Source: Takakia lepidozioides
Lineage: Eukaryota > Plantae > Bryophyta
Length of the DNA: 64,000 nt
Reading direction: 5' to 3'
Assembly (NCBI GenBank): GCA_030704615.1
Contig: CM060732.1
Coordinates: forward strand, 19,964,001-20,028,000
Shown: positions 2,738 through 23,580 of the stretch, one piece after another
Layout: every line of letters begins with the position of its first letter
How positions within the stretch are numbered: the stretch's first letter is position 1
Position numbers and translations under genes: made by a program
The notes under the pieces: model-generated
The model's input: the letters and a program-made list of their open reading frames with translations, nothing else
Databases searched by the model: none
Told to the model about the DNA's origin: nothing

Positions 2738-3071
2738 TGTAATATTTTCTTAATTGATTCATGTTTGCTGTTTGCTGTTTTTTTTGGGGCCCTGCCTTTG
2801 GAGGCCACTATTTACTAATTTAGTAGGTAGTAAGTTAGTAGGTAGTAAGAGGGGGGTCCCTTATATAGCCTCTCAGGGCGGTGGGACCCTTCTAGAAGCC
2901 CACCGACCTTCTAGAAGGCCTTGGACACATGTCAACCCTACAAGACTCTCTATTCTAAATTTAGCCAATTCCTCCCTTCTTTTTTTGGACCCCCTCATCT
3001 CATTCCTCAATACACGTGGCCTTCCTTACATAGGCGCCCCACTCTAATTCCTGGGCCACAATAATTCCTGA
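2738..3071. mobile_element. Left part of a solo-LTR-like repeat (~380 bp in total) split by the large hAT insertion
   Basis: 2806-3071 is the reverse complement of 13866-14140 with scattered mismatches and one ~10-bp indel. Joined to 18656-18710 it restores the continuous sequence of the inner copy. Termini are TGTAATAT (2738) and ATATTTACA (18710); a TATA-like TTATATAG lies at ~2851. The left boundary is tentative. Confidence 0.6.
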
Positions 3072-3311
3072 CCTAGTTGCAAATTTGGACGTGACGTGGC
3101 GTTGACGCGTCAGCATCACGTCCGACGTCAGCGACGGACGTGCATCACGTCACGTCCTAAACCGACGTTACTGTACATAAATATGTTTATTTTTTTACTT
3201 TATTATTGACTATTTACTATGAGAACCGACGTGGCAACCGATGTGGCCTCATTACGTGGACTTCATTAATTATCTGTAAAATTCATATATTAATTATTTA
3301 TATTGTCAATC

Positions 3312-3795
3312 ATGCGACCGTCAGCAAAAGTTGGTCGGACAATTTTATTTTATTTTTTTAAAATTGCGACAACCAGAAGGGGGTGGTCGCACATTTTTTT
3401 ATTTTTTAAATGGGTGCGACCACCAGCAGGTGGTGGTCGCATTTTCATTTTTTTTAATAGGTGCGACCACAAGCAGAGGGTGATCGCACATTTGTTTAAA
3501 AAAAAAATTGGGTGCGACCACCAGCAGGTGGTGGTCGCAACTTTTTCATTTTTTTTAAATAGGTGCGACCACCAGCAGGGGATGGTCGCACATTTTTAAT
3601 TATTTTTTAAATGGGTGCGACCACCAGCCGGTGGTGGTGGTCGCAGACTTTCTTTTTTGGGTTGATTAAGGTGCGACCACCAGAGGGGGAGGTCGCAGAC
3701 GTTTTTTTTGTTTTGTTATTAGTGCGGGGGTCCATAGGTACGACCGCTCCCTGGACACGTGACGAGGCGTGAATGGCCAGCAGAGGCGGTCGCAC
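3312..3795. repeat. Array 1 of ~8-9 palindromic 27-bp units (TGCGACCACC-agcaggg-GGTGGTCGCA) with T/A-rich spacers, ~50-bp period
   Basis: Units at ~3312, 3365, 3415, 3462, 3513, 3564, 3616, 3672 and a half unit at ~3777-3794. Confidence 0.9.
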
Positions 3796-3814
3796 GCCAG
3801 GCCTCTCCAGGCAG

Positions 3815-3823
3815 TATATAAGG
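3815..3823 (+). promoter_or_regulatory. Putative TATA box of the kinase cargo gene
   Basis: TATATAAGG ~20 bp after array 1, followed by a probable 5'UTR intron (GT 3862 to AG 4105) and the ATG at 4118. Confidence 0.55.
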
Positions 3824-4117
3824 GCCTACCCCTCATTCCCAACCCATTTTTTTCCCTTTCTGTGAGTGCGGTTCTGGGGCTTTTTGGAGTTTGAACTTCG
3901 GTGGCCAGGACTGAGCGTGGAAGGGGGGGGGGGAAGAAAGTGGATTTGTGTGGGGGAGGAGTTTTTTCCTTTTTTTCTTGGGACTGCGGGAGAGTTTGCT
4001 TTGGGTACTATACCAATAGAGGGTGAGGAAATTGGTCTGCTAGTATAAAAAATTATCAATAGTCTGGGTTTAGTTTTCCGTTACGAAGCCACGTCTATTC
4101 CGCAGAGTACTTTCATC

Positions 4118-5626
4118 ATGTCCGGAAACGTTGCTTCGAACGCAATGTCAGGGGGTTCCTCAGGAAGTGGGCGTAAAGGTAGGAAGCATAAACATGCACA
4201 TGAACGGGATAGTCAGGTCAACAAAAAAGACTATCCAAGCGCAAAGGCCGCGAAGGTGGTAAAGCAAGTAGTGCTAGATTATTTGAAGGACAATGACATA
4301 ATGCGTTTGAATCTTTTGTATGTCCGACATGGGAATGAGGGGTTCCTTAGATTCCAGCACAATATGGAGATGAGAATGAGGGAGGCTTTGGCCGGGGATG
4401 AATGGGAGGAGGACGGGGCGAAATTCCAGTTCACGAAATGGATGGAGGACCGGGCCCATGATGCCACATGGAATCTGAGGCAAACCATGGACAAGTTTGT
4501 TACGAGAACACCTATAGTTGAAGGTCGCATGCCAACTTCGGAGGAGGAGTTGTTTGTGCTCGTGGATTGGTGGTCTGACATGGCAAAGGCCCACGCCAAA
4601 CGACGTACGAAACCACTCCCATGGAAGGCAGGGTCCTCGTCCGCGGATGCGGCATTGAACGTGACATACATATCCACAAACGCACAGATACAACAACTCG
4701 ACGCGCCCAAACAGGGAGGGTATGGTACAATTCGGAGGGTTAGAATTGTTGGGGATCAATTCATTCCTCTATCTTGGGAGCTAGCAGGGAAAACGCCCAG
4801 GGAAACAAATGCTGAGCTTGCCAAAGTCCAACATAACAATGAGGCGTTGGTTGTAAAGTTCCATCATTTCGGCATCATAAAGTATTTTGCGTTGCATCCA
4901 CGTCGAAATGAAGGTTACACACATTGGTGGAATGGGGGGACCATACGATCATGGTTGAGTATTAACAGGAAATTGATGAATGATCGGGATAACATGGAGT
5001 TAATGGAACGACGGGGGACGGAGCAGGAAATGCAGGAGGTCAACCGACTGGTTCGATTCCGATAGAATCGCGCCCAATTGGCATAGGCGCTTTTGCACAT
5101 CATGCTCAACGTCCATAATCACCACCTCTTGCACAACGACATGTCCCCCGACAACATCTTGTTGCATTTTCCACAAGGGTCTGAAGATGTGTACATTGGG
5201 GTATGCGATTGGGGGATGGCCTCCACGACGGATGACCCAAAAACCACGTTGTACATTTTCGAGAGCAGAGACAAGAAGATAAAGACTCTCGCACATAGAT
5301 GGTGGATTGCACCTGAAATTGCAATTGTTCATAATGTAGCCAACAACCAGTCAGTCGGCATACCTCGTAGACCCCCTCTAACCGTGCCATCAGAGACCTT
5401 TGAAATTGAGAAGATAGCCCAGGCAATAAATGGGGGTAACACGTTCGATGCAAGCCTGTTTAACGATATGTCTACTGGAACCTGTTTTGCTTCGGCTCTG
5501 GAAAACTTGAGTGTAGACACAGTAGAGTTGCGATACAAACTAGAAAATGTTGTGAAGAGTTTCATGACGGGGCTATTCAAATGGCCTGAGCCCAAAAATT
5601 ACTGGAGGATGGATAGAAACTTGTAG
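4118..5626 (+). pseudogene. Intronless Ser/Thr-type protein kinase (~502 codons) with two in-frame TAG stops; transposon cargo
   Basis: ORFs 4118-5065 and 5093-5626 are in the same frame, separated by TAG at 5063 and 5084. Motifs: GGYGTIRRV (Gly loop), LAGK (beta3 Lys), HNDMSPDNILL (catalytic loop), CDWG (DFG equivalent), WWIAPE. The basic N-terminal stretch RKGRKHKH resembles an NLS. Confidence 0.85.
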
Positions 5627-7069
5627 ACCCCTAACTGTACATCATGTTTGAATAAATGTTGTTTTCAATTGTGTTTGTCTCGTACCATAATGTTTTAATG
5701 GTTGTTATTTGGCTATGGCACCTGGGTCCATCATATGGGATAATCAAGCACCACACCCACGAATTTTGAAGAGTGAAAGTGTACATCATGTCAATGGGTG
5801 AACCAATCGTTCCCCTGCCAAATGATTTTAGATTGATTTGAAACTTTGGGAGTGTCTTGTACATGCCCTCTTTAAGTTACCGGACAAGTATGAGGTCAAT
5901 CTAAAATGGTTCTAAGGGTGAACCAATAGTTCCTCTATTAAATGATTCAAGATTGAAAATTGGTTGAAAGGTTTAACGAGTCGTTCGGGGGGCAAATGAT
6001 TATTTCTTCGCTTGCAACTTTATGTACGTGATTTGTACGTACTTAAGCACATATGGACCAAAGTTGAACTTCAACAAAGTTGTTTGAATGGGTTATTCAA
6101 ATTCATAAGGATAAACAACCTTTCGTCTGCACATGAATTGTTTTTAATTCCATTCTGAAGCCATATGCTTGATAACAACATGAAGAGTTGCATGCAAAAT
6201 ATCACCATGAATAGACATCGCCTGCATTCAAAACACATTTTATTCCCTCATTTGCACTCCAAGGTGAAGTTATCTTCAACTTCATGCACTCTTCATAGAG
6301 AGTTCTGCAATAGTGAGCATAGAGCAAAGGATGAACGTTTTTTTTCAAATATTTTTCTTTGGTGCATTTTTTGGCAAGGATGTGGTGGTGTGAGGGTTCA
6401 ACTCACATAACAAAATCAAGCCAAAAACAAAATCATTGCACCCCACACTCATTGCGCCCTACAATCCTATGCCATCTAAATCATTTTATTTAGTAAAAAT
6501 CCAGTTCAATTCAAAATTGGATGAAAGGGTGAACGGAAACTTCCCCGATGCAATGATATTTTATTGCTCCGAAACTTTGCAAGTGTCTTCTACATGCCCT
6601 CTTACACGTCTTTGAGAAGTATGACATCAATCTAAAATGGTTTAAAGGGTGAATCAATCATCCCCCTACCAAATGATTTTTAATTGATTTGAAACTTTGC
6701 AAGTGTCTTGTACATGCCCTCTTACAGGTCTTTCACAAGTTTCAAGTCAATCTAAAATGGTTGAAAGGGTGAATCAATCATGAACATATCAAATGATTTT
6801 TGAGTGCTTTAAAGCTTTGCAAGTGTCTTTCACATGCCATTTTAAAGGTACCAGACAAGTATGAGGTCAGTAAAATATGGTTGAAAGGGTGAACCAATTG
6901 TTCCCCTATCAAATGATTTTACATTGCTTTGAAGCTTTGCAAGTGTCAGCCACATGCCCTCCTACAAGTACCGGACAAGTATGACGTGAATAAAAAATGG
7001 TTGAAAGGGTGAACCAATCATTCCGCTATCAAATGATTTTATATTGCTTTGGATGTCATTGCTTTGGTA

Positions 7070-7445
7070 ATTCTAGCCCCCCAATTGCCCATTGTAACCC
7101 TTGAATTACAATTCAAAATGCAATTCAAGCCCTTAAAATTGGTAATGCCAGTCCCTAAAATGACCAACCCCGGCCGCCCCTCAAATTGTAATTTGAGCCC
7201 TTGAAATTGTCAATTCCAACCACTCAAATTGCAATTGAAGCCCCTGAAATTTAATTCCAACCCTCAAATTACACTTCTAGCCCCTGAAATGACAATTCCC
7301 GCCCCTCAAATTGCAACTGTAGCATGTGAAATGGCAATTGCTAGTGCAGCCCCTGGAATGGCAATTTCAGCCCCTCAAATTGCAAGTCCAGCCCCTGAAA
7401 TTGGCAAATCGAGCCCCAGAAATGGCAATTTCAGCCTCTGAAATT
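7070..7445. repeat. ~21-bp minisatellite (GCCCCTGAAATTGCAATTCCA-like)
   Basis: Degenerate tandem units such as gcccctgaaatgacaattccc and gcccctcaaattgcaactgta. Confidence 0.8.
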
Positions 7446-7619
7446 GGCTATGGATGAACCAATCATCCCCCTGCCAAATGATTTTGGATTGATTTGAAAC
7501 TTTGCGAGTGTCTTGTACATGCCCTCTTAAAGTTACTGGACAAGTATGATGTCAATGTTAAATGGTTCAAAGGGTGAACCAACAGTTCCCCTGTTGGATG
7601 ATTCAGGATTAATCGTTAA

Positions 7620-9866
7620 CGATTGATCTCATATTACATTGGGACCTATCAGAGGGTACATTGAACACACTGGCCAAGTTTCAAAACGAAGGAAAATCAT
7701 TTGGATGGGCAACCATCCGTTGGCCCATTGAACAAATTTCGGTTGATCTCATATTACTCTGTGGCCTCTTCCATGGTACATTCAACATACTGGTCAAGTC
7801 TCAAAGCGAACCAAAATCATTTCGATGGCCAACCATTCGTTGAGCCATCGAACGAATTTCGATTGATCTGATATTAGTCCAACACATGTGAGAGGATGTC
7901 TCGAACGTACTGGCAAAGTTTGGAAGCAAACAAAAATGATTTGGATGGACAACCATCCGTTCACCCATTGAATGTATTCTGTTGGATTTGCTATTATTTT
8001 GCGACCTGTTGGACTGCGTTTCGCGTGCTCATGTTTTTTGTTTCATTCCGTTTTTAAATGGGGCGTGTAATGACTCCATATGCAACGTGCGTGCCAAATT
8101 TTGGGAGCGATCAAAATTCATTTGGACCCAAAACCACAGTTTCTTGCCCGTTTTGCACTCCAAACTTGATTTGTGCTATACTTCATGCACTCTTCATAGA
8201 GAGTTCTACAATAGTGAGCGAAGAGAACATTTTATTTTTGGGGCATTTTTGATTGGTCCAAATTTTGGCGGGGGAGTAGCAGTGGGATGCTTGAAGCCGC
8301 AAAACAAAATTGAGCCAAAAACAAAATCGATACGTTCCAAAAACCCCCAATGAAAGGCAGTGCAAACCTATTTATTGGCTTAAAATTAATTTAAATTCAA
8401 TTACATTATGGAATGGCTTGATGTCGATGGGGAGGCAAATGATTTATTCGGCTGTTGTGTCTCCACACATGTTCAAGCATATGCGGGCTAAAGAGGGGCT
8501 TCAACCACATCCGTTCAATGAGTGCAATAGCTGTGCACGCATTGCAGGATTTCTTTTTTGCAATGAACAAAAACCAGATGACAACTGAACGCCTCATTGG
8601 CCCATCGAACGAATTTCGATTGATCTCATATTACACTAGGACCTATCAGAGGGTACATTGAACACACTGGCCAAGTTTCAAAACGAAGGAAAATCATTTG
8701 GATGGGCAACCATCCGTTGGCCCATTGAACAAATTTCGGTTGATCTCATATTACTCTCGGGCCTCTTCCATGGTACATTCAACATACTGGCCAAGTCTCA
8801 AAGCGAACCAAAATCATTTCGATGGCCAACCATTCGTTGAGCCATGGAACGAATTTCGATTGATCTGATATTAGTCCAACACTTGTGAGAGGGTGTCTCG
8901 AACGTACTGGCAAAGTTTGGAAGCAAACAAAAATGATTTGGATGGATAACCATCCGTTCACCCATTGAATGTATTCTGTTGGATTTGCTATTATTTTGCG
9001 ACCTGTTGGACTGCGTTTCGCGTGCTCATGTTTTTTGTTTCATTCCGTTTTTAAATGGGGCGTGTAATGACTCCATATGCAACATGCGTGCCAAATTTGG
9101 GAGCGATCAAAATTCATTTGGACCCAAAACCACAGTTTCTTGCCCGTTTTGCACTCCAAACTTGATTTGTGCTATACTTCATGCACTCTTCATAGAGAGT
9201 TCTACAATAGTGAGCGAAGAGAACATTTTATTTTTGGGGCATTTTTGATTGGTCCAAATTTTGGCGGGGGAGTAGCAGTGGGATGCTTGAAGCCGCAAAA
9301 CAAAATTGAGCCAAAAAAAAAATCAATACGTGCCAAAAACCCCCAATGAAAGGCAGTGCAAACCTATTTATTGGCTTAAAATTAATTTAAATTCAATTAC
9401 ATTATGGAATGGCTTGGTGTCGATGGGGAGGCAAATGATTTATTCGTCTGTTGTGTCTCCGCACATGTGTCGCACGCATATTCAAGCACATGCGGGTACA
9501 AGAAGGGCTTCAACCACATCCGTTCAATGGGTGCAATAGCCGTGCACGCATTGCAGGATTTCTTTTTCGCAATGAACAAAAACCAGATGACAGCTGAATG
9601 CCTCATTGGCCCATTGAACGAATTTTGATTGATCTCATATTACACTGGGACCTATCAGAGGGTACATTGAACACACTGGCCAAGTTTCAAAGCGAACAAA
9701 AATCATTTGGATGGGCAACCATCCGTTGGCCCTTTGAACGAATTTCGATTGATCTCATATTACTTTGAGGCCTCTTCCATGGTACATTGAATATACTGGC
9801 CAAGTCTCAAAGCGAACCAAAATCATTTGGAGGCAAATGATTTATTCGTTTGTTCATTTTTTTCGT
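7620..9866. repeat. Recent ~1-kb tandem duplication (2 full copies plus a partial third)
   Basis: Near-identical ORFs at 7661 and 8658 (offset 997); a third copy has the same point at 9667 and is truncated at ~9830. The block is flanked by the 13-bp direct repeat GATTAATCGTTAA (7607-7619, 9867-9879). Confidence 0.9.
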
Positions 9867-10353
9867 GATTAATCGTTAATGGTGAAAAGGATAAACCAAA
9901 GGTTCCTTGATCCAAAAAAATTTGAATGATTTGAAATTTTGCCAGTATGTTCGACATGCCTCTTACATGGACCGGACAAGTATGAGATCAATAAAAAATG
10001 GTTCACAGGGGGAACCAATGGTTACTTGATGTGCCAATTTCTGAATGCTTTCAAACTTTGCCATTGCATTGTACATGCCCTCTTAAAGGTACCGGACGAG
10101 TATGAGTTCGATTTAAAATATTGCAATGGGTGAACCAATGGTATCTTCATTCAATAATTTTTGATTGTTTTGAAACTTTGCCAGTATATTGTACATGCCG
10201 TCAAACAGGTACCGAACAAGTATGAGGTCATTCAAAAATGGTTCAAAGGATGAACCTCGTATTTCCAAAAATTACGTAGACTATACAGTGGGTTGCACAT
10301 TTAAGTTTTCGCAACCTGAGACCTTTGGCCTACTCCCTACGTTTCTAGCCTTT

Positions 10354-12581
10354 CTAGTCATCTTCATCTAGATTTATTACTTTGTTGTCGTCATCTCCAG
10401 ATGTTGATGAAGATGCTCCAAAGAAATTGTCCAACACCTCCTCCTGTTGGGGGTCTCTGCGCAACTCTGGAGGAAATGGCCCTTCATCCCGACGAAGCAC
10501 CCAATATCTCTCATTCATATCATCCCAACGGATGCTAGCGGCCTCCAACTCCATCAGAAATAGGTCTCTCCCAATCGGTTCGCGATTGTATGGGTCGTTT
10601 TCCGCTGGCACCCACGGATCCTCAGGCAGTCGGAAGAATCTTTGTCTGGTATAGCTCCAATGCCCTCCCAAGTTCCGGCAAAAAAACTCCCTTTGGACTG
10701 GGTCCCGTATGCCTCTAGCACGTACGGTTATTTCCCAGTTGGATGTCATCCAAAAGGTCACCAGATGTTTAACCCTAGTTAACGTCTTCGCATCCAAGGC
10801 GTGCATCTCTTTTGGAGCATCCCATGTCATTGTCTCCCCCCAGTGCTGCCAATTTAAAAAATCGTAAGACGATACATCCAATGGCATGTTGTACCGGTTG
10901 TACTCGTATCCCGTGGGCATATTGTCTTGCAACCCAAACAACTCGTAGAAACGTCGATGGATTGGTCCACGACAGTTAGGGTATTTGGCTGGCTCGCATG
11001 GCTGCCGATATGAGACATGCGGGGTCAAACAAATGGCCACATGAACCAAGCATATAGCCTCCCTCCGGTCCGTAAGGGTTTAGGCACATTGTGCACACCG
11101 TACCATCTGTTACCCATGACGCTGGATTGCTCCATGGTATCCACGTCCGTTTATCCTCATGAATGTTGGATGACATCCTCGGCCTGCTGTCCCACTCCTC
11201 CTCTACTTCCAAATCCCAGTTTATGCTCTTATTGGTATCGGAAATTGTATGCACACAGTGCTCAAACATGGCATCCACATAACCCCATGGGGTGAATCCA
11301 GTGTACTTCGACGTTAATACATCACGCACAATGTCGTGCCTTTGCAAATTAGTAGAGATGCTATCTACGCTTCGATTCGACAAATGTGTTGCACGTTGGA
11401 GGGAGGACAACGCTTCTTCTATCCGTGTTTCCCGCGATGCTAGATGGCCCGCCCATGTCACCCAATTCCGCCAATTCTCCTTCAACCATGGCCACGATCG
11501 GATTTGCATGGCATTTGAGTATCGATATGCAATAGCCCTAGCTTGCTCGCGTTCCCCCACAAGCTGCTTTAATTCCTGTTCTTGGGCCGATGTAATTTGC
11601 ACGGCTGAACATTCCCTAGTTTCCACTATGGGGTCCTTCCCTTTTCTTGCCCTCTCCGCCGCAAGTCTTTCTTCCTCAACCCTCGCCGGATCCAGTTCAG
11701 GCGTTTGCACTTCATTCCCATGCTCGATTGAGTCAACCCCATCGATGACGCGGTCAATGTCCATTGATGGCATATTCAAACGCGCCAATATGTTTTGCTC
11801 GTTGGTGATTGGCCTCGGGTCCTGAAGCACACCGCGTACGCTGTCGAGAGTCCCCAACCCCATTTTTTCCAGTAACTTCGCTATTTGCCACCGTTGCAAA
11901 TGAACAATGTCTTGCAGGTCCTTGATGTGCTGTTCATGTGCGGCCAACTGTTCCTCCAACGGAGAGCGTACCTCGCCCCCCTCCACCTCAGACGTTGAAG
12001 GCCCGGCTGCGGAGACCTGTTGCGGCGTATAATCTGGAGCCTCCTTCTTCCACCTCGTCGTTTCCATCCAACCGTATGATGTCCTGCCCCTGACGTATAT
12101 ACAAGTCTGGGATATCAGAGAACATGTATAGTCTAGTACGATGTCTCGCAGTGGCAGTTTGCCAATCCACTGGTCGCAATAAAATCAACTCTGTGTACAA
12201 CATGGCCGCAAATAAATATGGGACCTTGTTGTTGACGAGCGGTTGACCCCACAATGTTGTATGTACCTTATCTACCCTGTGGCGGAAATGCGAGTTGGCG
12301 CAGGAATGCAAGCTAGCTTGATTTTGTTTGGTTTGTGGATCATGCCTATCTCTGGGCCACAAACGATTTATGTGACACTAGTCCACAAATTTCCTGCAGT
12401 CACCAAGCGACCACCGCTGCCCCAACCTCCAAACTTCCTAACCTGGTTCCGCAAGAATGTTGGGGTCATTGTATATGTCCCAACAAAGTTCGCGCCTGGC
12501 CCTTTTTGGTTTTTTTTTGGGAGGTCCAGGTTCATTATCATCATCCCTTGGATGACCTCCTCTGTCTTCCTCCTCCGCCAT
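10354..12581 (-). pseudogene. Intronless NLS / coiled-coil / RING-H2 finger protein (~740 codons; putative E3 ligase); transposon cargo
   Basis: ATG at 12581 gives MAEEEDRGG...PPKKKPKRARR (NLS). TAG stops at 12440 and 12380; frameshifts near ~12060 and ~10985 join ORFs 11988-12362, 10976-12067 and 10354-11049. Coiled coil LEEQLAAHEQHIKDLQ. RING pattern CTMC-x14-CGHLFDPAC-x10-YPNC, with two ligands degenerate. Confidence 0.7.
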
Positions 12582-12942
12582 TTATGGCCCTGGCTTACCC
12601 CTACTTGACAGGTGTTTGCTAAGAAAAATGCTCTCCCAACCCTCCTAAATCGTACCTAATCCTACTCTCTAACGAATCCTCCCCAAGTACTAGAGACACG
12701 TGTCACTCCCTTCGCGGTTCTAAGTGATATGACGCAATGTGCAATGAAAAAAATGTGGGTGCCAGAGGAGGGCTTCCCGGGAGGTACCCAGCATCGATTT
12801 CGTAGAAACCAACGGCCCAAAATACCCCCCACCCAACCAATAGCACCCCTCTCCACTTGGACTCAATGACAAGGAATGCAACATCCCATCGCCCACCAAG
12901 TCCTGGTGTGGAGAAAAGTGAGGGAGAGAATGGCCTCCAAGG

Positions 12943-12950
12943 CCTTATAA
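12943..12950 (-). promoter_or_regulatory. Putative TATA box of the RING cargo gene
   Basis: TTATAAGG on the minus strand, ~60 bp from the proximal unit of array 2. Confidence 0.45.
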
Positions 12951-13429
12951 GCCCCCCCTCCACACTCAGGGTGCGTGCTGTCATCATGACTGCGCACGCT
13001 AGTAATAGCTGCGACCGCCAACAGGGGGTGGTCGCATCATTTTTTTTTTCTTTATTAGGTGCGACCACCAGCAGGGGTGGTCACAAAAAAATTATTTATT
13101 TAATAGGTGCGACCACCAGCAGGGGGGTGGTCGCAGATTTTTTTATTTTTTTAATGGGTGCGACCACCAACAGGAGGGTGGTCGCAGATTTTTAAAAAAA
13201 AAATAGGTGCGACCACCAGCAGGGAGGTGGTCTTTAATTTTTCTTTTTTTTAATAGGCGCGACTACCAGTAGGGGGGTGGTCGCAGAAATTTTATTTAAA
13301 ACAAATAGGTGCGACCACCACCTGCTGGTGGTCGCACTATTTTCCTTTTTTTAAAATAGATGCGACCACCAGCAGGGGGGTGGTCGTAGGGGGGTGGTCG
13401 CATAATTTTCCGATTTTTTAATATCTACC

Positions 13430-13670
13430 AACAGTCAGTAGCTCAGTTGGTTAAGTGCACTGAGTGCGACCTGGACGATTCTGGGGTCAAATCTTGCTAC
13501 TTGATGGGTGTGGTATGGTTTGTGTGTGGTGCCCCATTCCTACGCCTCATGGCGCATAAATGAAAGAGGTTATTTTCACTTCTCACTACTAAGGGGCCTG
13601 ATTTGTGAGCTGTCGCTCCCAGGTGTTTCCCAAAACAAAACAAAAAAATAAATAAATTTTAAAAAAAAAA
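13430..13670 (+). mobile_element. tRNA-derived SINE
   Basis: Pol III A-box TAGCTCAGTTGG (~13439), B-box-like GGGTCAAATC (~13484), a unique body and an A-rich tail (13632-13670). It sits in an AT-rich spacer of array 2; no clear TSD. Confidence 0.65.
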
Positions 13671-13816
13671 TCCGCGACCACCAGCAGGGGGGTGGTCGCA
13701 CCATTTTTTTTAGGGGCGACCACCAACAAGGGGGTGGTCGCAGAATTTTCTATTTTTAAATAGCTGCGACCACCAATAGGGGGGTGGTCGGACCATTTTT
13801 CTTTTTGTTAAATAGG

Positions 13817-14140
13817 TGCAAATAATATGTAGAGCAGTTTCATTCGGGCCCTGATTCTACAGTGGTCCAGGAATTACTGTAGCCCAGGAATTAGAGTGGG
13901 GCGCCTATGTAGGAAGGCCACGTGTATTAAGGAATGAGATGAGGGGGTCCAAAAAAAGAATGGAGGAATTGGCTAAATTTAGAATAGGGAGTCCTGTAGG
14001 GTTGACATGTGTCCCAGGGCCTTCTAGAAGGCTCCCAGGGTCGGCGGGCTTCTAGAACGGTCCCACCGCCCTGAGAGGCTATATAAGGGAACCCCCCCCT
14101 TACTACGTACTAACTTACTACCTATTAAATCAGTAAATAG
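13817..14140. mobile_element. Second copy of the solo-LTR-like repeat (inverted, truncated at one end, uninterrupted)
   Basis: Reverse complement of 2806-3071 plus 18656-18710. It starts with TG and is flanked by the direct repeat TAAATAGGTG (13809-13818, 14134-14143) inside a palindrome unit. Confidence 0.75.
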
Positions 14141-14923
14141 GTGTGACTACCAGCAGGGGGGTGGTCGCAACATTTTTCTTTTATTTTAACAGTTGCGACG
14201 ACCGCTACTGGTGGTTGCACAATTATTATTTTTAAAATAGGTGCGACCACCAGGAGGTTGGTCCCCTTGCACCTGTATGTATATTTGGAGAGGCAAATAA
14301 AAAGCACATGTATCGACTCCCCATGGATTTGTGAAGGGGAAGATGAATGTTGGGAGCTGCACCTGGCCTTTGTGGCTTTCGAAACCATAATAGGAAATCA
14401 ACAATGTAAAGATAATGACGAAACACAAACACACGCACAACCACCAAACCCTTTCTTGGGTACACATATTCCACCATTTTTATTTCCGTACACGTATGCA
14501 TGTACCCAAACTGAAACATGGATATCCATGGAAACATACTACACATAATGTGACAGAAGTTATAGCTGTACTTAGTTCCGTCTGGCACGACGACGATGGT
14601 ATGATCTCACGCCTAGTACAAAATCTTCGTCCCCACTCACTTCACCCCCGTTCCCATGATCAGTGCTAGAATCATGATCTCCATCTGTTCTTTCGTTTCT
14701 AGAGGCAACTGGCCGTTGGACCTGTAGTCGTCCTCGGAGTACGTTCACTTGTATCTCTAGTCAATTTCCACTCCTATCATGAATACCATCTAGGGTATCA
14801 GGCCTGTTCACAGATCGCTCACCAACAAAAAGTTGCACAATTCTCTACCGTTTCTAGGCTTGTCCCGGATTTCGTGGTGGCCTTGGAGCAGGTCTCGCAC
14901 GAGGAAGGCTACTCGCACGTACA

Positions 14924-17504
14924 TCAGAGGGGCCGACATGAGAGGAAGGGGCCGAGGGAGCACGGTTCACATGCGGACGTTGTCGGGCCAGATGAAACGA
15001 CAATAGCCGGTTTGACTTGCAGAAGTCCCGCAGTAGAAGAAGCATCTCCCAGGATCGGAGTAGCGATGGAAGGAATTACATGAGGGGGAGAGAGACTAGA
15101 TGGACCAGCATGGGATGGACCGGCTTGAGAAAGAGAAACATGAGATGGAGCGGCGTGAGATGAAGCACGGTTCACAGGGACACGATGTCGGTGAAAGAAT
15201 GACAACGGTCGGTTGTCATCATCCGACGATTCGACCTGCACATCTCCCGCAGTCCATGGAACTCGTGGTGGGGGAGAGTTGACATCAACTTCATTGTTAA
15301 GAGTGTGCTCCACTGGGGAAAAAGGGTCCACAATTGGGATGACACCATATCGCAGTTCATCATCAACAAGGTCATCGAATGATGGATGCATTGCAACATC
15401 ATTGTCATTAAATTCATATGGGTCATGTGGAGGATTGTCCACATCATCGGACCCATCCCAACCGTTGGAGTCGGAGTCCCTTGCGGTGTCGGTGTCATCA
15501 TTGCTGCTAGATTGGACATCTGAGGCAGATTCTTCAGACAACAGATTCTTCTCGTACCATGCAGATGTGTCACTTGCTGTCCTCTCTCGCCGTAGGCTAC
15601 AATTCGTGTAGACATAAACCAATTTGTCAGCCCTGGCAGGATTCAACCTGTTGCGAATCTTGTTGTGAACAAACAAGTAACTGCTCCAGTTCCGCTCACA
15701 GGACGACGCTGAGCACACTTGAGCAAGAATATGCTTTGCAATGGGAGCTAACGTTCTTGCTCCAGCTCCAATCAGATCCCACCATTCATGTGGCAACACG
15801 TTCATTGCTTTTGGATCCGACATGTCATGGAAAGGATTCTGGCGATCCGAGAAGCACTGGTACTCGGACAAAGCTCGCTCTACCATGTTCAAGGGCGCGA
15901 GTTGCATGATGACCCGTACAAGCCCGACTTTGGCATCCACATCGTCTCTCAAATCTGTATTGTCCTGCAAGAATGGATTTAGCAAGGCCCCTGCATAATG
16001 CAAGTCCGTGCGAACCATCCGTTTGCGGTCGTAAAATGCATCATCGGTCCTTGCCGCCAAATCATCGTCCATAGAAAATGGAGGACGCCTCAAGGATTGC
16101 ATGTGCTTCTCAAGGTTTTCCAATATCAACCATGCTTTATCCATTATTGGTTGTTTTCCATCAAACTCCCGCAAAGCAATCAACACCGGCTCCACCATGT
16201 ACACAAAATTTGCACATTTCGCCCAGAAATCGTCGGAGCGAATGATTGCGCGGACCCTCCGACTTTTGCTCAAAGACTTGGACTTACGAGAGTCGCGTAA
16301 GGTGCCCACATACGCATCCCATTGAGGGTCAATGATCAGCTGCTCCAGACCCGCCCTCACAGTCACCAGTCGATCCACCATCAAAAAGTTTGTGGCAAAG
16401 CGGGTTTTACCCGGGTTCCTAAGGCTGTATTTGGGTTCATGCTTTCTAAACAATGCCAGAGGGATGTGATGTATACGAATGAACGTCACAACCGACTTTG
16501 TCCTTTTTACTAGTTGTTTCATCCATGATTCTTTTCCTCAATCCTCCAAAAGGAGATCAAAGATATGAGCAGCACACCTTTGATAATATAGATGGGGATA
16601 TCGTACCATCAAAATATCGGCCATATTAACCATGTTAGATGCATTGTCCGTGTACACTTGGACAAATTTTATTAGCTCCAATTTTATCGATGAAACTCGT
16701 CAACAATCCTGCTTGATAACGTGCATCTTTTCTCTCCCCGCTTGTGTCAACGGATCCCAAAAATTGTTCCCCCGCAGGACAGACCAGCATGATATTGAAC
16801 AGTGGTCGATTACTAACAGAACTCTAACCGTCCGCACATATAGTGCTTCCATATTTCCGGAGAGAATCACCTGTCTTTTCATTCACCTTTTGGGTGAGGT
16901 CAGAGATAGCCTCTTCTAGCAATCTTGTGCGGAGATCGCGATAACTCGGAGGTGTGTATGTGGACTTGGAATCGGACGTGGCTTTGACAGCAGCCACAAA
17001 CGCAAGAAGCCTCGAGACATTGAACGGAATATTGGCCTCGTAGAAAAATTGGGTCCACTTCTTATCTAGAGTCCTCCTGTGCGACAAATTTAAGCCTTCT
17101 TGCATTGATTGTTGCCTCAATGGTCTGGTCCGTACAAGTGCTGGCGTACAATCGGGTGTTGCTCCTGACCCACCGGCTTCTCCACGAACAGCAGACGCCT
17201 CGCAAGAATCCCCCTGGGTACAACTCTGAGGGACATTTTGATTCGAACCTGGAGTGTTTGGCTCAGAAGCCGCGGCCACATCAAGAGACAGTGGGATATT
17301 GCCTCTACATTGGGCAAAGTGGGCTTTCACTCGCATGAAGGCTTTTGGGCACAAACTAGCCCCTGCATTCTTTCCATCTCTGTAGCCGAGGTGATATAAC
17401 ATGCGATCTTTGCGACCCGCCAGCTTCAATGCACAAAGATTGCATTGAACACCGTCTTTTTTGTGCGGGTCTACGGTGAACCAAGGGATCCACTCCTCCC
17501 TCAT
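14924..17504 (-). pseudogene. hAT-family transposase (BED zinc finger, DUF659, hAT dimerisation domain) with two in-frame stops
   Basis: BED-like CNLC...HL; FFYEANIPFN; PSY..LRTRLL; ADG* (TAG 16824-16826 where DGW is expected); VQVYTDNASN; CAAH; LLED* (TGA 16538-16540); TRFAT; WWDLIG; SASSCERNWS; RNRL; LVYVYTN. All lie in one frame. Confidence 0.95.
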
Positions 17505-17813
17505 CCTCACACCCAAAACCCTAACCACAAAGGTTGAACGAAGAACACTAGTGTACTTGGTAGATTTGTCAAGAGCAATAGAAGTTAGAACAGAATGCGA
17601 TGGCCCAACACTACGGCATCAATCCATCCAAGTAGATCAATGCACCATGTAATATTGTGTTTTTCGACAATTTGCTGTAGTGGCTCTGGTGGAAGCCACA
17701 ACAACAAACAGTCCGCACCCTCCTCTTGGGCTTACACTCTTGCTCAAGGAATAGAGAACATTCACTCGCCACAAAAGTGTTTGCCACAAAAGAAGTGAGG
17801 GGTATTGGGACCA

Positions 17814-17822
17814 CCTTATATA
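17814..17822 (-). promoter_or_regulatory. Putative TATA box of the transposase gene
   Basis: TATATAAGG on the minus strand, ~50 bp from the proximal unit of array 3. Confidence 0.55.
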
Positions 17823-17869
17823 CCCTCCAGCCTCCAAGCCTCACACGCTCGACGAATCAGAATCCAATG

Positions 17870-18433
17870 TTGCGACTGCTCCAGGTCGCACGAGGAAGTC
17901 ACATGTTATTTTTTAAAAAAAAACTGCTGCGATCACCCTCATGCTGGTGGTCGCAGATATTAAAAAACAGAAAATTGTTGCGACCACCCCCCTGCTGGTG
18001 GTCGCACCTATTAAAAAAAAGAAAAATGTTGCGACCACCCCCATGCTCGTGGTCACAGAGATTATTAAATAAATAAAATAAATAAAAAATAAAAAATTGC
18101 TGCGACCACTCCCCTGCTGGTGGTCGCACCTATTAAAAAAACTGAAAAATGCTGCGACTACCCCCATGGTGGTGATCGCAGATATTAAAAAATAAAAAAC
18201 TGTTGCGACCACCCCCCTGATGGTGGTTGCACCTATTACAAATAAAATAAAAATTGTGCGACCACCAGTAGCGGTGGTCGCAACTGTTTAAGAAAAGAAA
18301 AAAATGCGACCACCCCTGCTGGTGGTCGCATCTATTTTTAAAAAACAAAAATGCTGCAACAACCCCTCTGCTGGTGGTCGCAACTATTAAAAAATAAGAT
18401 AAATTCTGCCACCACCACCATTTGGAGGTCGCA
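17870..18433. repeat. Array 3 of ~11 palindromic units, inverted relative to array 1
   Basis: TGCGACCACC-ccctgct-GGTGGTCGCA units at ~17871, 17927, 17979, 18030, 18101, 18152, 18204, 18257, 18305, 18355 and 18407. Confidence 0.9.
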
Positions 18434-18655
18434 CCAATTTAACAATAATGATTTTACAAATATTGGCGGATGGAGTAATTTATAAAACAATTCATTCACT
18501 TGCCAAGATGTCGCCTGGAATACAACGTGTCCACCTACGTGGCATATTTTTCACCTAACTCATGTTTTACTGATTTTTCGGCAAAACTGACGTGACGTTG
18601 GTTGCGTCAGCGTCAAGTCCGACGTGACGTGACGTCACTGACGTGCGCAACCCTG

Positions 18656-18710
18656 ATTCCTGGACCACTCTAGAATCAGGGCCTGAATGAAACTGCTCTA
18701 CATATTTACA
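18656..18710. mobile_element. Right part of the split solo-LTR-like repeat
   Basis: ATTCCTGGACCACTCTAGAATCAGGGCCTGAATGAAACTGCTCTACATATT matches the reverse complement of 13824-13873 and ends in ...TTTACA. Confidence 0.75.
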
Positions 18711-21436: not shown

Positions 21437-23049
21437 TGGCATTGGAGTGGAGAGTTGCTTTTAGGCTGGTTGCTGTATGTGAGATGGGATGTACGTTGTT
21501 TATGAAGAGGGAGGGGGGTTGTGTTTGGTGGAAGCGGCGGGCTAGTCATCTTCTCCTATGTGTCATGGTCTTGTTCTCGTTTTGCTGTGTCTGGTCGTGA
21601 GTGAGCAGTGGCAAAGTGGGGGGCAGGCCGAGTGTTGGGGTCGTGATGTTCTCCTTTGTGTCATGCTCTCTTCATCGTTTGCTGGTCTGGTTCGTGAGTG
21701 AGCATGGGCAGGGTGGGGGGGGGGCCAGGCCAAGTGTTGGGTTTTGTTGTTTTTTTGGGTGTTGTTGTTTTTTGGGGAGGGTGGATCGTGCTGTCAAGGG
21801 TGGGGTCTTGTTTGTGGGGGTTCTCTGGCTGCTTGGGGGGGGGGGGGGACTGTCTGCACACTGGGCAGATCAGGGGGTTCAAGCCCCCCTCAGTTCTTAG
21901 TCGTGGCTGGTTTCTTTGGCTAGCAGTTGGCCTTGTAAGGTTACCTTAAATTACCTCAGATGAGATCTGGCTCATTTTTATTATGAATTGCGGCACTCAG
22001 TGGCTGAAGTGCGCACCTTAGCGGCTGAAGTGATCACCTCAGCGGCTGATCAAGTGGTGCACTTCAGCGGTATAATTTGGAAATTTTTATTTTATTTTAT
22101 TTTGTGCTTAATGGCAGGTGGACATGGTCGTTGCTTCCCCGGGACCCATTCACTCGCAGCAGATGGGCCCGGAAGCCAAGTCGGGTAGCCAATTGGGCGC
22201 GCACCCATTTTGCTGATGTGGCCCCCTGTGTGGCCTGCCGGAACTGTTTACCGGACAAGCCTCTGTGGGCATGAGATGGAAGTGACTGGAAAAATCACAA
22301 AAAAACCCATCTATAGAGCAATTTTTGGTTTTTTTCAAAACATTTTGGGCCTCTTCTTGCCCTGTGGGCCCTGCAGGATTGCACTAAAGGAAACTTGATT
22401 TTGTAAAAAACTGGAGGAGCTATGTGGATCTTCCTTTCCCTGTGTAGTTTTTCTTCCATTGAACCCCCCCCTAATATTACTCCAAGGCACTCGTCTCGAG
22501 TTCCAAAATGCTGATGAAGTCCGCTTTTCGAATCACACATGATCGCGCGAGATAGAACAGTTCTCTGCCTCCACCACCATGGAAAACCAGTACAATTTAT
22601 AAAACCCAATTTCAATCAACGACGAGGATGCTGTCAGTTGCTCTGGGAGGGATTTTGGAAGCAGCCAAAATTACTTCAATCCATTTTAAAAGAGGGAGTT
22701 TACAAAGCTTCCACAATCCATCTAGGACCAAGTAAGACGACCATCGTGTGTGATTGAATTGTGTGTTATGGACCATCCAGTCACAGACGAAGATCGTGTG
22801 AGTTGGTCCCCATCGTATTATGCAAACATCGTAAAATTCATTCTCATGAAATATTATGAAGTACTTTTGAAAGCCTCCACAATCCGTTTGGCACCACATG
22901 ACAGCATCTTCGGTGTGGATTGAGTACACAACAAACTCCTCCAGCCTCCAGCCTCATCTGTTTCAGCCTCCACTGATAATGAAGTCATCTTGTTTTGATA
23001 ACATTTGATAACACTGTTGTTCCATGCCAGCTCCACAAGACGAGATATT

Positions 23050-23580
23050 AGGAAACCACGCGCGATCGCTCGTGGCTTATCTCAAACTTCGTTGACCAAC
23101 TTTTAGGCCCACTGGAGCTTGCAGAACATTGACAGTGTTACATAAAGAATGTTATTAATGAAAAAGCCAATGGTTTAATTCATCAATAATACAGAGTTGC
23201 TTCCCAAACGGCTCACACTCAAGGCATATGTGCGAGACCGACGTTGGTTACCATTGATGGCGGAACTCTGCGCACTCGAGGAAATGGATACAGTCGGAGA
23301 TTGATCGAACATATCAGGGAACCACGCGCGATCGCGCGTGGTTCATCTCAAACTTCGTAGACCACCATTGAGGCCATAGGAGCTTGCAGAACATTGACAG
23401 TGTTACATAAAGAATGTGTTTAATGAACAAGCCAATAGTTTAATTCATCAATAATATAGAGTTGCTTCCCAAACGGCTCACACTCAAGGCATATGTGCGA
23501 TATCGCCGTCGGCTACCACTGATGGCGGAACTCTACGCACCTGAGGAAATGGATACAGTCAGAGATTGACTGAATATATG
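23050..23580. repeat. 266-bp tandem duplication starting with the palindrome ACCACGCGCGATCGCGCGTGGT
   Basis: Copies start at ~23055 and 23321 and share long identical stretches such as GGAGCTTGCAGAACATTGACAGTGTTACATAAAGAATG. Confidence 0.9.

Follow-up and report, generated by a model that had tools for sequence, protein, structure and literature searches.

The subject of this analysis is a 64,000-nucleotide stretch of the genome of the moss Takakia lepidozioides (hereafter the window; GenBank assembly GCA_030704615.1, contig CM060732.1, positions 19,964,001 to 20,028,000 of the forward strand), in which an earlier note, made from the sequence alone, had described three arrays of palindromes, each immediately upstream of a TATAAGG box that points into a gene. 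All three arrays lie inside one hAT transposon of 15.6 kb (3072-18655) that carries genes for a transposase, a kinase-like protein and a RING-H2 protein, all of them broken in this copy. When the arrays are compared with one another and with those of related elements, their palindrome arms prove to be strongly conserved, and an array is found before the TATA box of every gene in more than one arrangement of the genes.

The element and its genes

The boundaries of the element were set by comparison with the ends of relatives. Its two flanks (2808-3071 and 18656-18706) combine to form a single copy of a 317-bp repeat, termed repeat X, and an uninterrupted, inverted paralogue of this repeat at 13824-14140 serves as a paralogous empty site. 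From this empty site and the 8-bp duplication at the borders (Table 1) it follows that 3072-18655, with its three arrays, was inserted as one unit. The terminal inverted repeats read CAGGGTTGCG at the right end and, in degenerate form, CCTAGTTGCA at the left. Clusters of GACGT occur only twice in the 64 kb, once at each end of the element, and they are conserved in relatives; the earlier note's observation that the termini carry a motif different from that of the arrays is thus borne out. The 8-bp duplication, the short terminal inverted repeats and a C-terminal dimerization domain place the element in the hAT superfamily.

The gene models rest on open reading frames (ORFs) and homology. PF05699 is recognized in the transposase (E 7.5e-07; score 29.3 bits, cut-off 21.4), and DUF659 and PF05699 are both found in its homologues. 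The relatives used here are unannotated metagenome contigs, designated by L numbers, that were found by transposase homology at 41-54% identity. Homologues of the kinase-like gene are present in L007, L043 and L039, of which the L039 copy scores above the Pfam cut-off, and the RING of relative L041 is likewise above its cut-off. The first coding exon of the RING gene (ATG at 12581) has homologous counterparts in the first exons of L006, L043 and L001.

Table 1. Position of the hAT element's features in the window
Feature	Position	Strand	Description
Left target-site duplication	3064..3071	.	8 bp, ATTCCTGA; matches ATTCCTGG at 18656-18663
Left terminal inverted repeat	3072..3093	+	CCTAGTTGCAAATTTGGACGTG, degenerate; 22-bp alignment with relatives' ends CAGGGTTGTCATTTTGGACGTC (L006) and CAGAGTTGTCAGTTTGGATGTC (L001)
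Left subterminal GACGT cluster	3088..3172	.	9 copies
Array 1	3313..3697	+	8 units, loops mostly 7 nt
Lone half-site	3785..3794	+	GGCGGTCGCA; 21 bp ahead of kinase-gene TATA box
Kinase-gene box	3815..3823	+	TATATAAGG; CTCATTC 17 nt past box start
Kinase-like gene	4118..5626	+	Two ORFs, interrupted; Pkinase E 6.7e-07, below curated cut-off
RING-H2 gene	10354..12581	-	Conserved N-terminal domain, coiled coil, RING and C-terminal part; frameshifted and stopped
RING-gene box	12943..12949	-	TATAAGG; CTCACTT 27 nt past box start
Array 2 (internal)	13010..14266	+	14 units, loops mostly 8 nt; oriented as array 1
SINE-like insertion splitting array 2	about 13427..13670	+	A-rich tail; DNA-run depth much higher
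Repeat X inserted in array 2	13824..14140	-	317 bp; paralogue of the whole element's target site
hAT transposase gene	14924..17504 (ORFs 14924-17528)	-	BED-like CxxC...H motif, DUF659, hAT dimerization domain; three ORFs
Transposase-gene box	17814..17822	-	TATATAAGG; CTCACTT 23 nt past box start; half-site 17806-17815 abuts
Degenerate promoter-proximal unit	17870..17890	-	Nearer consensus in other genomic copies (17877 T>C)
Array 3	17928..18433	-	10 units, mostly with 8-nt loops; orientation opposite to arrays 1 and 2
Right subterminal GACGT cluster	18589..18648	.	7 copies
Right terminal inverted repeat	18634..18655	-	Ending ...GCGCAACCCTG; ends fixed by comparison with relatives
Right target-site duplication	18656..18663	.	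8 bp, ATTCCTGG

The palindrome arrays and the constraint on their arms

The unit of the arrays is a palindrome, TGCGACCACC-N5-10-GGTGGTCGCA, with a loop that varies from 5 to 10 nt. When half-sites were paired with loops of 4-11 nt allowed, 32 good units were obtained (8 + 14 + 10 across the three arrays), with none outside the arrays in the 64-kb window; the distance from one unit's centre to the next averages 51 bp (range 42-71 bp), in line with the periods of 50-52 given by Tandem Repeats Finder. The about 33 units at roughly 50-bp spacing reported earlier are therefore upheld, except that the loop is not a fixed N7: a strict search of the 64 kb for the 27-mer with an N7 spacer (up to 3 mismatches) recovers only 9 units because the loop length varies. 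The half-site GGTGGTCGCA, with at most one mismatch, has 64 matches in the 64 kb against 2.6 expected, 58 of them inside the arrays. The whole unit is asymmetric, running TTTTAATAGG, arm, AGCAGGGG, arm and T-tract, and this asymmetry corrects the orientation of the arrays, such that arrays 1 and 2 point the same way and array 3 the opposite way. The distance from the nearer tip is 241-625 bp for array 1 and 222-727 bp for array 3. A scan of public metagenomes for the palindrome returned 31 single chance matches and no arrays, the family being absent there in array form.

Within the units, the arms match the consensus at 94-95% of positions as against 69-72% for the flanking spacers, which consist of A/T tracts and are near saturation. 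Identity over the whole unit is 0.70-0.77 and is the same between arrays as within them. At three arm positions that are mutated in this copy (18159, 18175 and 18358) the other genomic copies have the consensus base. From these comparisons, the arrays are old and their arms are held by selection on sequence. The units can form 10-bp hairpins (folding energy -11.6 to -13.5 kcal/mol, with z from -5.7 to -6.7), and selection of the arrays as hairpins was considered, but at none of the 37 altered arm positions does the other arm carry a compensating change. What is constrained is thus the half-site sequence and not hairpin pairing, and selection for hairpins is ruled out.

The earlier note had interpreted the palindromes as phased sites, about five helical turns apart, for a dimeric factor. 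The two parts of this proposal fared differently. The much stronger conservation of the arms than of the spacers, together with changes that are never compensated, fits protein half-sites. Helical phasing as a feature of the family is ruled out by the periods of the relatives' arrays, which are 9-10, 12-14, 20-21, 30 and 50 bp.

Predicted core promoters at the arrays

TATAAGG occurs at 8 sites in the 64 kb, and three of these (3817 on the plus strand, 12943 and 17814 on the minus strand) are each on the gene side of an array, directed into the gene, with the array edge 21-60 bp away. This site search confirms the original description of one such box between each array and the kinase (+), RING (-) or transposase (-) gene. 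When promoter regions from the window and the relatives were examined together, a TATA-like box was present in 14 of 14; (C/T)TCA(C/T)T(C/T) follows 17-30 nt past the box start in nine of them, and ATCACTTTT occurs at about the same distance in three more. A distant RING homologue has the same signature of a TATA box and a CTCACTT-type element. A putative TATA-plus-initiator core promoter is thus conserved in the family. The predicted 5' untranslated regions of the RING and transposase genes (12860-12925 and 17730-17790), which lie downstream of the TATA box, are about 70% similar over some 60 nt, and this similarity suggests that the two promoters are paralogous.

At the transposase promoter, a half-site on the minus strand, GGTGGTCCCA (17806-17815), directly abuts the TATA box (TATATAAGGTGGTCCCA), and a protein bound there would overlap the TATA region. 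Repeat X also has a TATATAAGG box of its own, at 2859 on the minus strand in the flanking copy and at 14080 on the plus strand in the copy within array 2.

The internal array

Array 2 lies 4.4 kb from the right end of the element, with the TATA box of the RING gene to its left and the 3' end of the transposase gene to its right. Neither a terminal repeat nor a GACGT cluster was found beside it, which excludes the possibility that it is the end of a nested element. Its extent has to be revised, since the 1257-bp span contains only about 680 bp of array, split by two insertions. Both gaps are later insertions: the left one has the appearance of a short interspersed nuclear element (SINE) and the right one is the second copy of repeat X. 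A sequence in array 2 that resembles an end of the element (13824-13886, matching 18644-18706) was rejected as a hAT end, as it is part of the host repeat X.

The SINE-like insertion begins with a tRNA-like sequence, GTAGCTCAGTTGG, and has a very high copy number in DNA sequencing runs. It is also abundant in probable RNA contigs, which end at its borders, and ARAGORN called no tRNA in it. Repeat X, which is likewise present in probable RNA contigs, has served both as the target of the hAT insertion and as a later insertion in array 2; no obvious terminal repeats or target duplication of its own were found. One DNA contig joins 13228 to 14153 and skips both the SINE-like insertion and repeat X, although it has no more than 25 nt on one side and is thus weak evidence.

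Array and gene order in related elements

Each gene in at least five of the related lineages has, directly upstream of a TATA box, a block of a motif peculiar to that lineage, and all blocks of one element share one motif. The RING gene accompanies the transposase in L001, L006, L041 and L042, the kinase gene does so in L039, and both are found in L007/L043; the two accessory genes accompany this clade of transposases at 41-54% identity. L007/L043 is a single contig with about 14.7 kb between two terminal repeats (no clear target duplication was seen there) and represents a second complete element with three genes and three arrays. Its three GGGGTCGGACTGG arrays each lie directly before a TATA box, that of the transposase, that of the kinase (the internal array) and that of the RING gene. 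The orientation of the arrays relative to their genes is the same as in the window, with transposase and kinase alike and RING opposite, an agreement that has a chance of 1 in 4. In L039, one end comprises a terminal repeat, a GACG cluster, an array of GCCT(G/C)GACGGCC (246-366), a TATA box and the transposase, and on the other side the same motif recurs, inverted, as an array with a 50-bp period (6183-6455) followed by a TATA box and the kinase gene; the GACGGCC motif is confined to these two inverted arrays.

Three further relatives combine arrays at promoters with arrays at ends where no gene starts. L006 has one CGTCCGATCCAGC array (about 9452-9905) between the divergent TATA boxes of its RING and transposase genes, and another beside the GACGT cluster at its right end (13775-13930), an end at which no gene begins. 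In L042 the TATA box of the transposase is preceded by an internal array of 30-bp period, and there is a terminal array (12380-12530) without a promoter; L001 has short GGCCGTCCGCC clusters before the RING and transposase genes and at its right end (12936-12984). Arrays in this family are thus not restricted to subterminal positions, as internal ones also occur in L007/L043, L006, L042 and L001. For the same set of elements, the reading of the arrays as promoter elements is supported by the array before each gene's TATA box but is incomplete, since the arrays at gene-less ends imply that they are not only promoter elements. The terminal repeat CAGGGTTG (CAG[G/A]GTTG...) and the GACGT cluster are conserved across lineages, whereas the array motif differs; GACGT-type end clusters were found in L001, L006 and L007, and that of L039 was read directly from the sequence.

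Candidate readers of the arrays

The putative reader of the arrays was sought among the three proteins of the element. An N-terminal alignment of the transposase, from which relatives' rows with stop codons were dropped, contains a conserved CxxC-x13-H motif. A PDB sequence search with the four-sequence alignment used to model the transposase N-terminus found nothing. Both accessory proteins, kinase and RING, have basic stretches resembling nuclear localization signals. The RING protein has an N-terminal domain of about 125 residues (L043 8720-9319 and homologues) that is all-helical, is represented by 143 sequences at 50% clustering, was modelled by AlphaFold with a predicted local distance difference test (pLDDT) score of 86, and is mildly basic (median isoelectric point 8.7). 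No match to this domain was found in Pfam, Foldseek PDB, VIA-align wide or Atlas (best Z 2.5), a word-based protein search with the RING C-terminal ORF gave no match, and Atlas feature searches with the kinase N-terminus and the RING N-terminal ORF returned scores of about 0.8, which are uninformative. No DNA-binding fold or motif was recognized in the accessory proteins.

The arrays had earlier been likened to the targets of VANC, the proteins of Arabidopsis VANDAL elements that bind element-specific repeats. Pfam, Atlas and fold searches detected no VANC homologue in the element, its genes being only those for the transposase, the kinase-like protein and the RING-H2 protein; shared with VANC targets is the arrangement in tandem arrays that differ between related elements.

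Interpretation of the arrays

We consider the chances about even that selection has maintained the arrays, in a lineage of three-gene hAT elements, as clusters of a recognition site specific to the family and read by a putative element-encoded protein. Functional sites for a factor tied to the element are suggested because every gene keeps an array despite rearrangements of gene order, and because each lineage uses a motif of its own throughout its arrays. Each block lies between a predicted promoter of the TATA-plus-initiator type on one side and either the conserved end module (terminal repeat plus GACGT cluster) or internal DNA on the other. In the mechanism we propose, one element-encoded, sequence-specific DNA-binding protein would occupy all blocks of its own family. 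By analogy with other hAT elements, the transposase is the most likely candidate for this reader; as a dimer or oligomer, it would bind the two 10-bp half-sites through a BED-like zinc finger at its N-terminus. The outer two blocks would aid the recognition and pairing of the ends, as other hAT subterminal repeats do, and the positions of the relatives' arrays make a role in end recognition likely. All three blocks would make transcription of the three genes depend on the reader being present, whether by auto-activation, auto-repression or relief of silencing. BED domains of hAT transposases are known to bind subterminal repeats, cooperatively on a quasi-palindrome (PMC10368747), and a plant transposase alone activates its cognate copies (bioRxiv 10.64898/2026.08.24.746577).

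Several observations weigh against this interpretation. The distance between half-site centres, 17-18 bp, does not correspond to a whole number of helical turns, and the uniformity of the arrays could come from recombination between them instead of from selection. At the place of the CxxC-x13-H motif, an intact relative matches zf-BED with E 0.099, below threshold, and an AlphaFold model of the transposase N-terminus built from four sequences has a pLDDT of 42 and is unusable. Two probable RNA runs cover only the SINE-like insertion, repeat X and a 280-nt piece of the transposase gene. In addition, the conservation of the terminal repeat and GACGT cluster across lineages whose array motif changes means that, if the transposase reads these conserved motifs, a different, faster-evolving protein may read the arrays.

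This last point is the core of a rather unlikely alternative to a transposase reader, according to which an accessory protein, via the RING-H2 protein's N-terminal domain or the N-terminus of the kinase, would read the arrays in the manner of VANC and keep the promoters active or unmethylated, its specificity co-evolving with the sites. End motifs that stay constant while the array motif turns over suggest two separate readers, and genes for both proteins accompany the transposase throughout this clade. Basic stretches resembling nuclear localization signals occur in both, and the RING N-terminal domain is real, widespread, confidently modelled and mildly basic. The targets of VANC, too, form tandem arrays in non-coding DNA, and they vary from one related element to another (PMC5735166). 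The failure to recognize a DNA-binding fold or a VANC homologue speaks against such a reader, however, and the arrays at the gene-less ends of L006, L042 and L001 fit transposition better than a purely transcriptional role. A more specific form of the same idea appears unlikely to us: a nuclear kinase and a RING-H2 ligase whose N-terminal domain lacks a known fold would together make up a system of self-recognition and regulation in a hAT lineage of non-seed plants, with one of the two reading the fast-evolving palindrome before every gene. This system would be an independently evolved counterpart of VANC or TnpA that acts through phosphorylation or ubiquitination at the element's own promoters.

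If the arrays were instead cis-acting sites for transposition only, their proximity to TATA boxes would be incidental, promoters being at the ends, and the internal array would be a by-product of rearrangement, for example an L006-like array split by an inversion or a relic end. Arrays 1 and 3, within 222-727 bp of the ends and inverted, do resemble the sites of Ac, Tol2 and Hermes in this respect (PMC10368747); the relatives' arrays at gene-less ends agree, and the 8-nt loops and rare 'gctact' unit that arrays 2 and 3 have in common are consistent with a shared origin. Against this, internal arrays directly before a TATA box are found in the window, L007/L043, L006, L042 and L001 despite their differing gene orders. 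Nor does the internal array adjoin a terminal repeat or GACGT cluster, and the agreement of array and gene orientation over three genes between the window and L007/L043 would arise at random with a chance of 1 in 4. We regard a role confined to transposition as improbable. Still less probable, in our view, is that the arrays have no dedicated reader and are tandem expansions acting through host factors or DNA structure (sites of host transcription factors, nucleosome exclusion by T-tracts, or cruciforms), or are neutral. Tandem repeats expand readily, and the hairpin folding and A/T-tract spacers would suit a structural role, but the complete lack of compensatory changes and the conservation of arms beside spacers near saturation argue otherwise, and a private motif for each lineage, used in all of its arrays, is predicted neither by a common host factor nor by generic structure.

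Comparison with known systems

In En/Spm, the 12-bp motifs bound by TnpA, located in subterminal regions that overlap the promoter, are sites of an element protein that serve both end recognition and control of the element's own promoter. En/Spm belongs to the CACTA superfamily and has one promoter at one end and no internal array, whereas here there is an array for each gene. The terminal repeats of MuDR each hold a promoter and transposase sites for the inward-reading genes mudrA and mudrB. These sites form part of long terminal inverted repeats instead of tandem arrays, and there is no third internal block, unlike in the element described here. The usual description of hAT elements is of transposons with a single gene, in which the subterminal repeats have no function outside transposition. 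As in their subterminal repeats (AAACGG hexamers in Ac, and those of Hermes and Tol2), a short motif recurs here over some hundreds of base pairs inside both ends and is inverted between them. The present arrays differ in that the units are 27-28 bp, in a regular 51-bp tandem 220-730 bp from the tips with the GACGT cluster nearer the tips, and in the third, internal array, the TATA box at each array and the two conserved accessory genes. In Hermes a quasi-palindromic pair of repeats is bound by two BED domains (PMC10368747), to which the palindromic units here may correspond. A link between TnpA and transposases has been described (bioRxiv 10.64898/2026.08.24.746577).

By analogy, the closest functional counterpart would be the VANC system, in which the arrays likewise vary among related elements and a protein encoded by the element reads them (PMC5735166; PMC10398659). 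VANDAL elements are of the Mutator-like superfamily, while the present element is a hAT with kinase and RING-H2 accessory genes, a spaced palindrome and no VANC homologue. To our knowledge, a pair of this kind for self-recognition has so far been known from VANDAL/VANC and Spm/TnpA. Element-specific arrays of binding sites are thus already known, and what would be notable here, going by the sequence, is one array per gene in a three-gene hAT lineage. A literature search found no account of a hAT element that carries kinase and RING genes or that has arrays at its promoters, though its coverage was incomplete and this is weak evidence.

The lineage keeps three genes with a block of a private motif before each, and the motif is replaced in all blocks together as lineages diverge, a pattern expected of a co-evolving protein-site pair by which a transposon recognizes and controls its own copies. 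The element therefore offers a testable case in early-diverging, non-seed land plants, with 10-bp half-sites as probes and three candidate readers, and it is relevant to a recent suggestion that transposases are by their nature transcription factors.

RNA coverage, decay of this copy and other repeats

No sequencing run on record as RNA was found to contain the stretch. In the two probable RNA runs the 5' ends and promoters of the three genes have no coverage, which is no proof of silence. Relative to this copy, the other copies differ by T>C at 61 and A>G at 47 positions against C>T at 23 and G>A at 15, an excess of C-to-T-type changes in this copy that fits a methylated, silenced and decaying element.

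Further repeats were noted in and around the elements. The space that separates the kinase gene from the RING gene at their 3' ends, about 4.5 kb (5789-10286), is taken up by satellite-like tandem repeats of 120 bp, and this block contains two 300-bp stretches that are 99% identical (8097-8396 and 9093-9392). Among the relatives, L006 has a run of the plant telomere type, (TTTAGGG)n, beside a motif array at 4690-4720. Within the element of L007, two inverted arrays of a 20-bp unit, GGGTATTCTCAGAATCTTTA, lie at 16258-17480 with a hAT-like end, CAGGGTTGTTTATTACGACGTCAC, at 16432; this region may be a gene-less relative that is nested here and has an array motif of its own. Outside the element of L043, a 170-bp tandem repeat (636-1237) contains TAGGTCGGACCGACCTA palindromes with the core GTCGGAC, as in that element's arrays. 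The window also contains, at 23045-23569, a 265-bp tandem duplication (89% identical) with the palindrome CACGCGCGATCGCGCGTG, which is unrelated to the hAT element.

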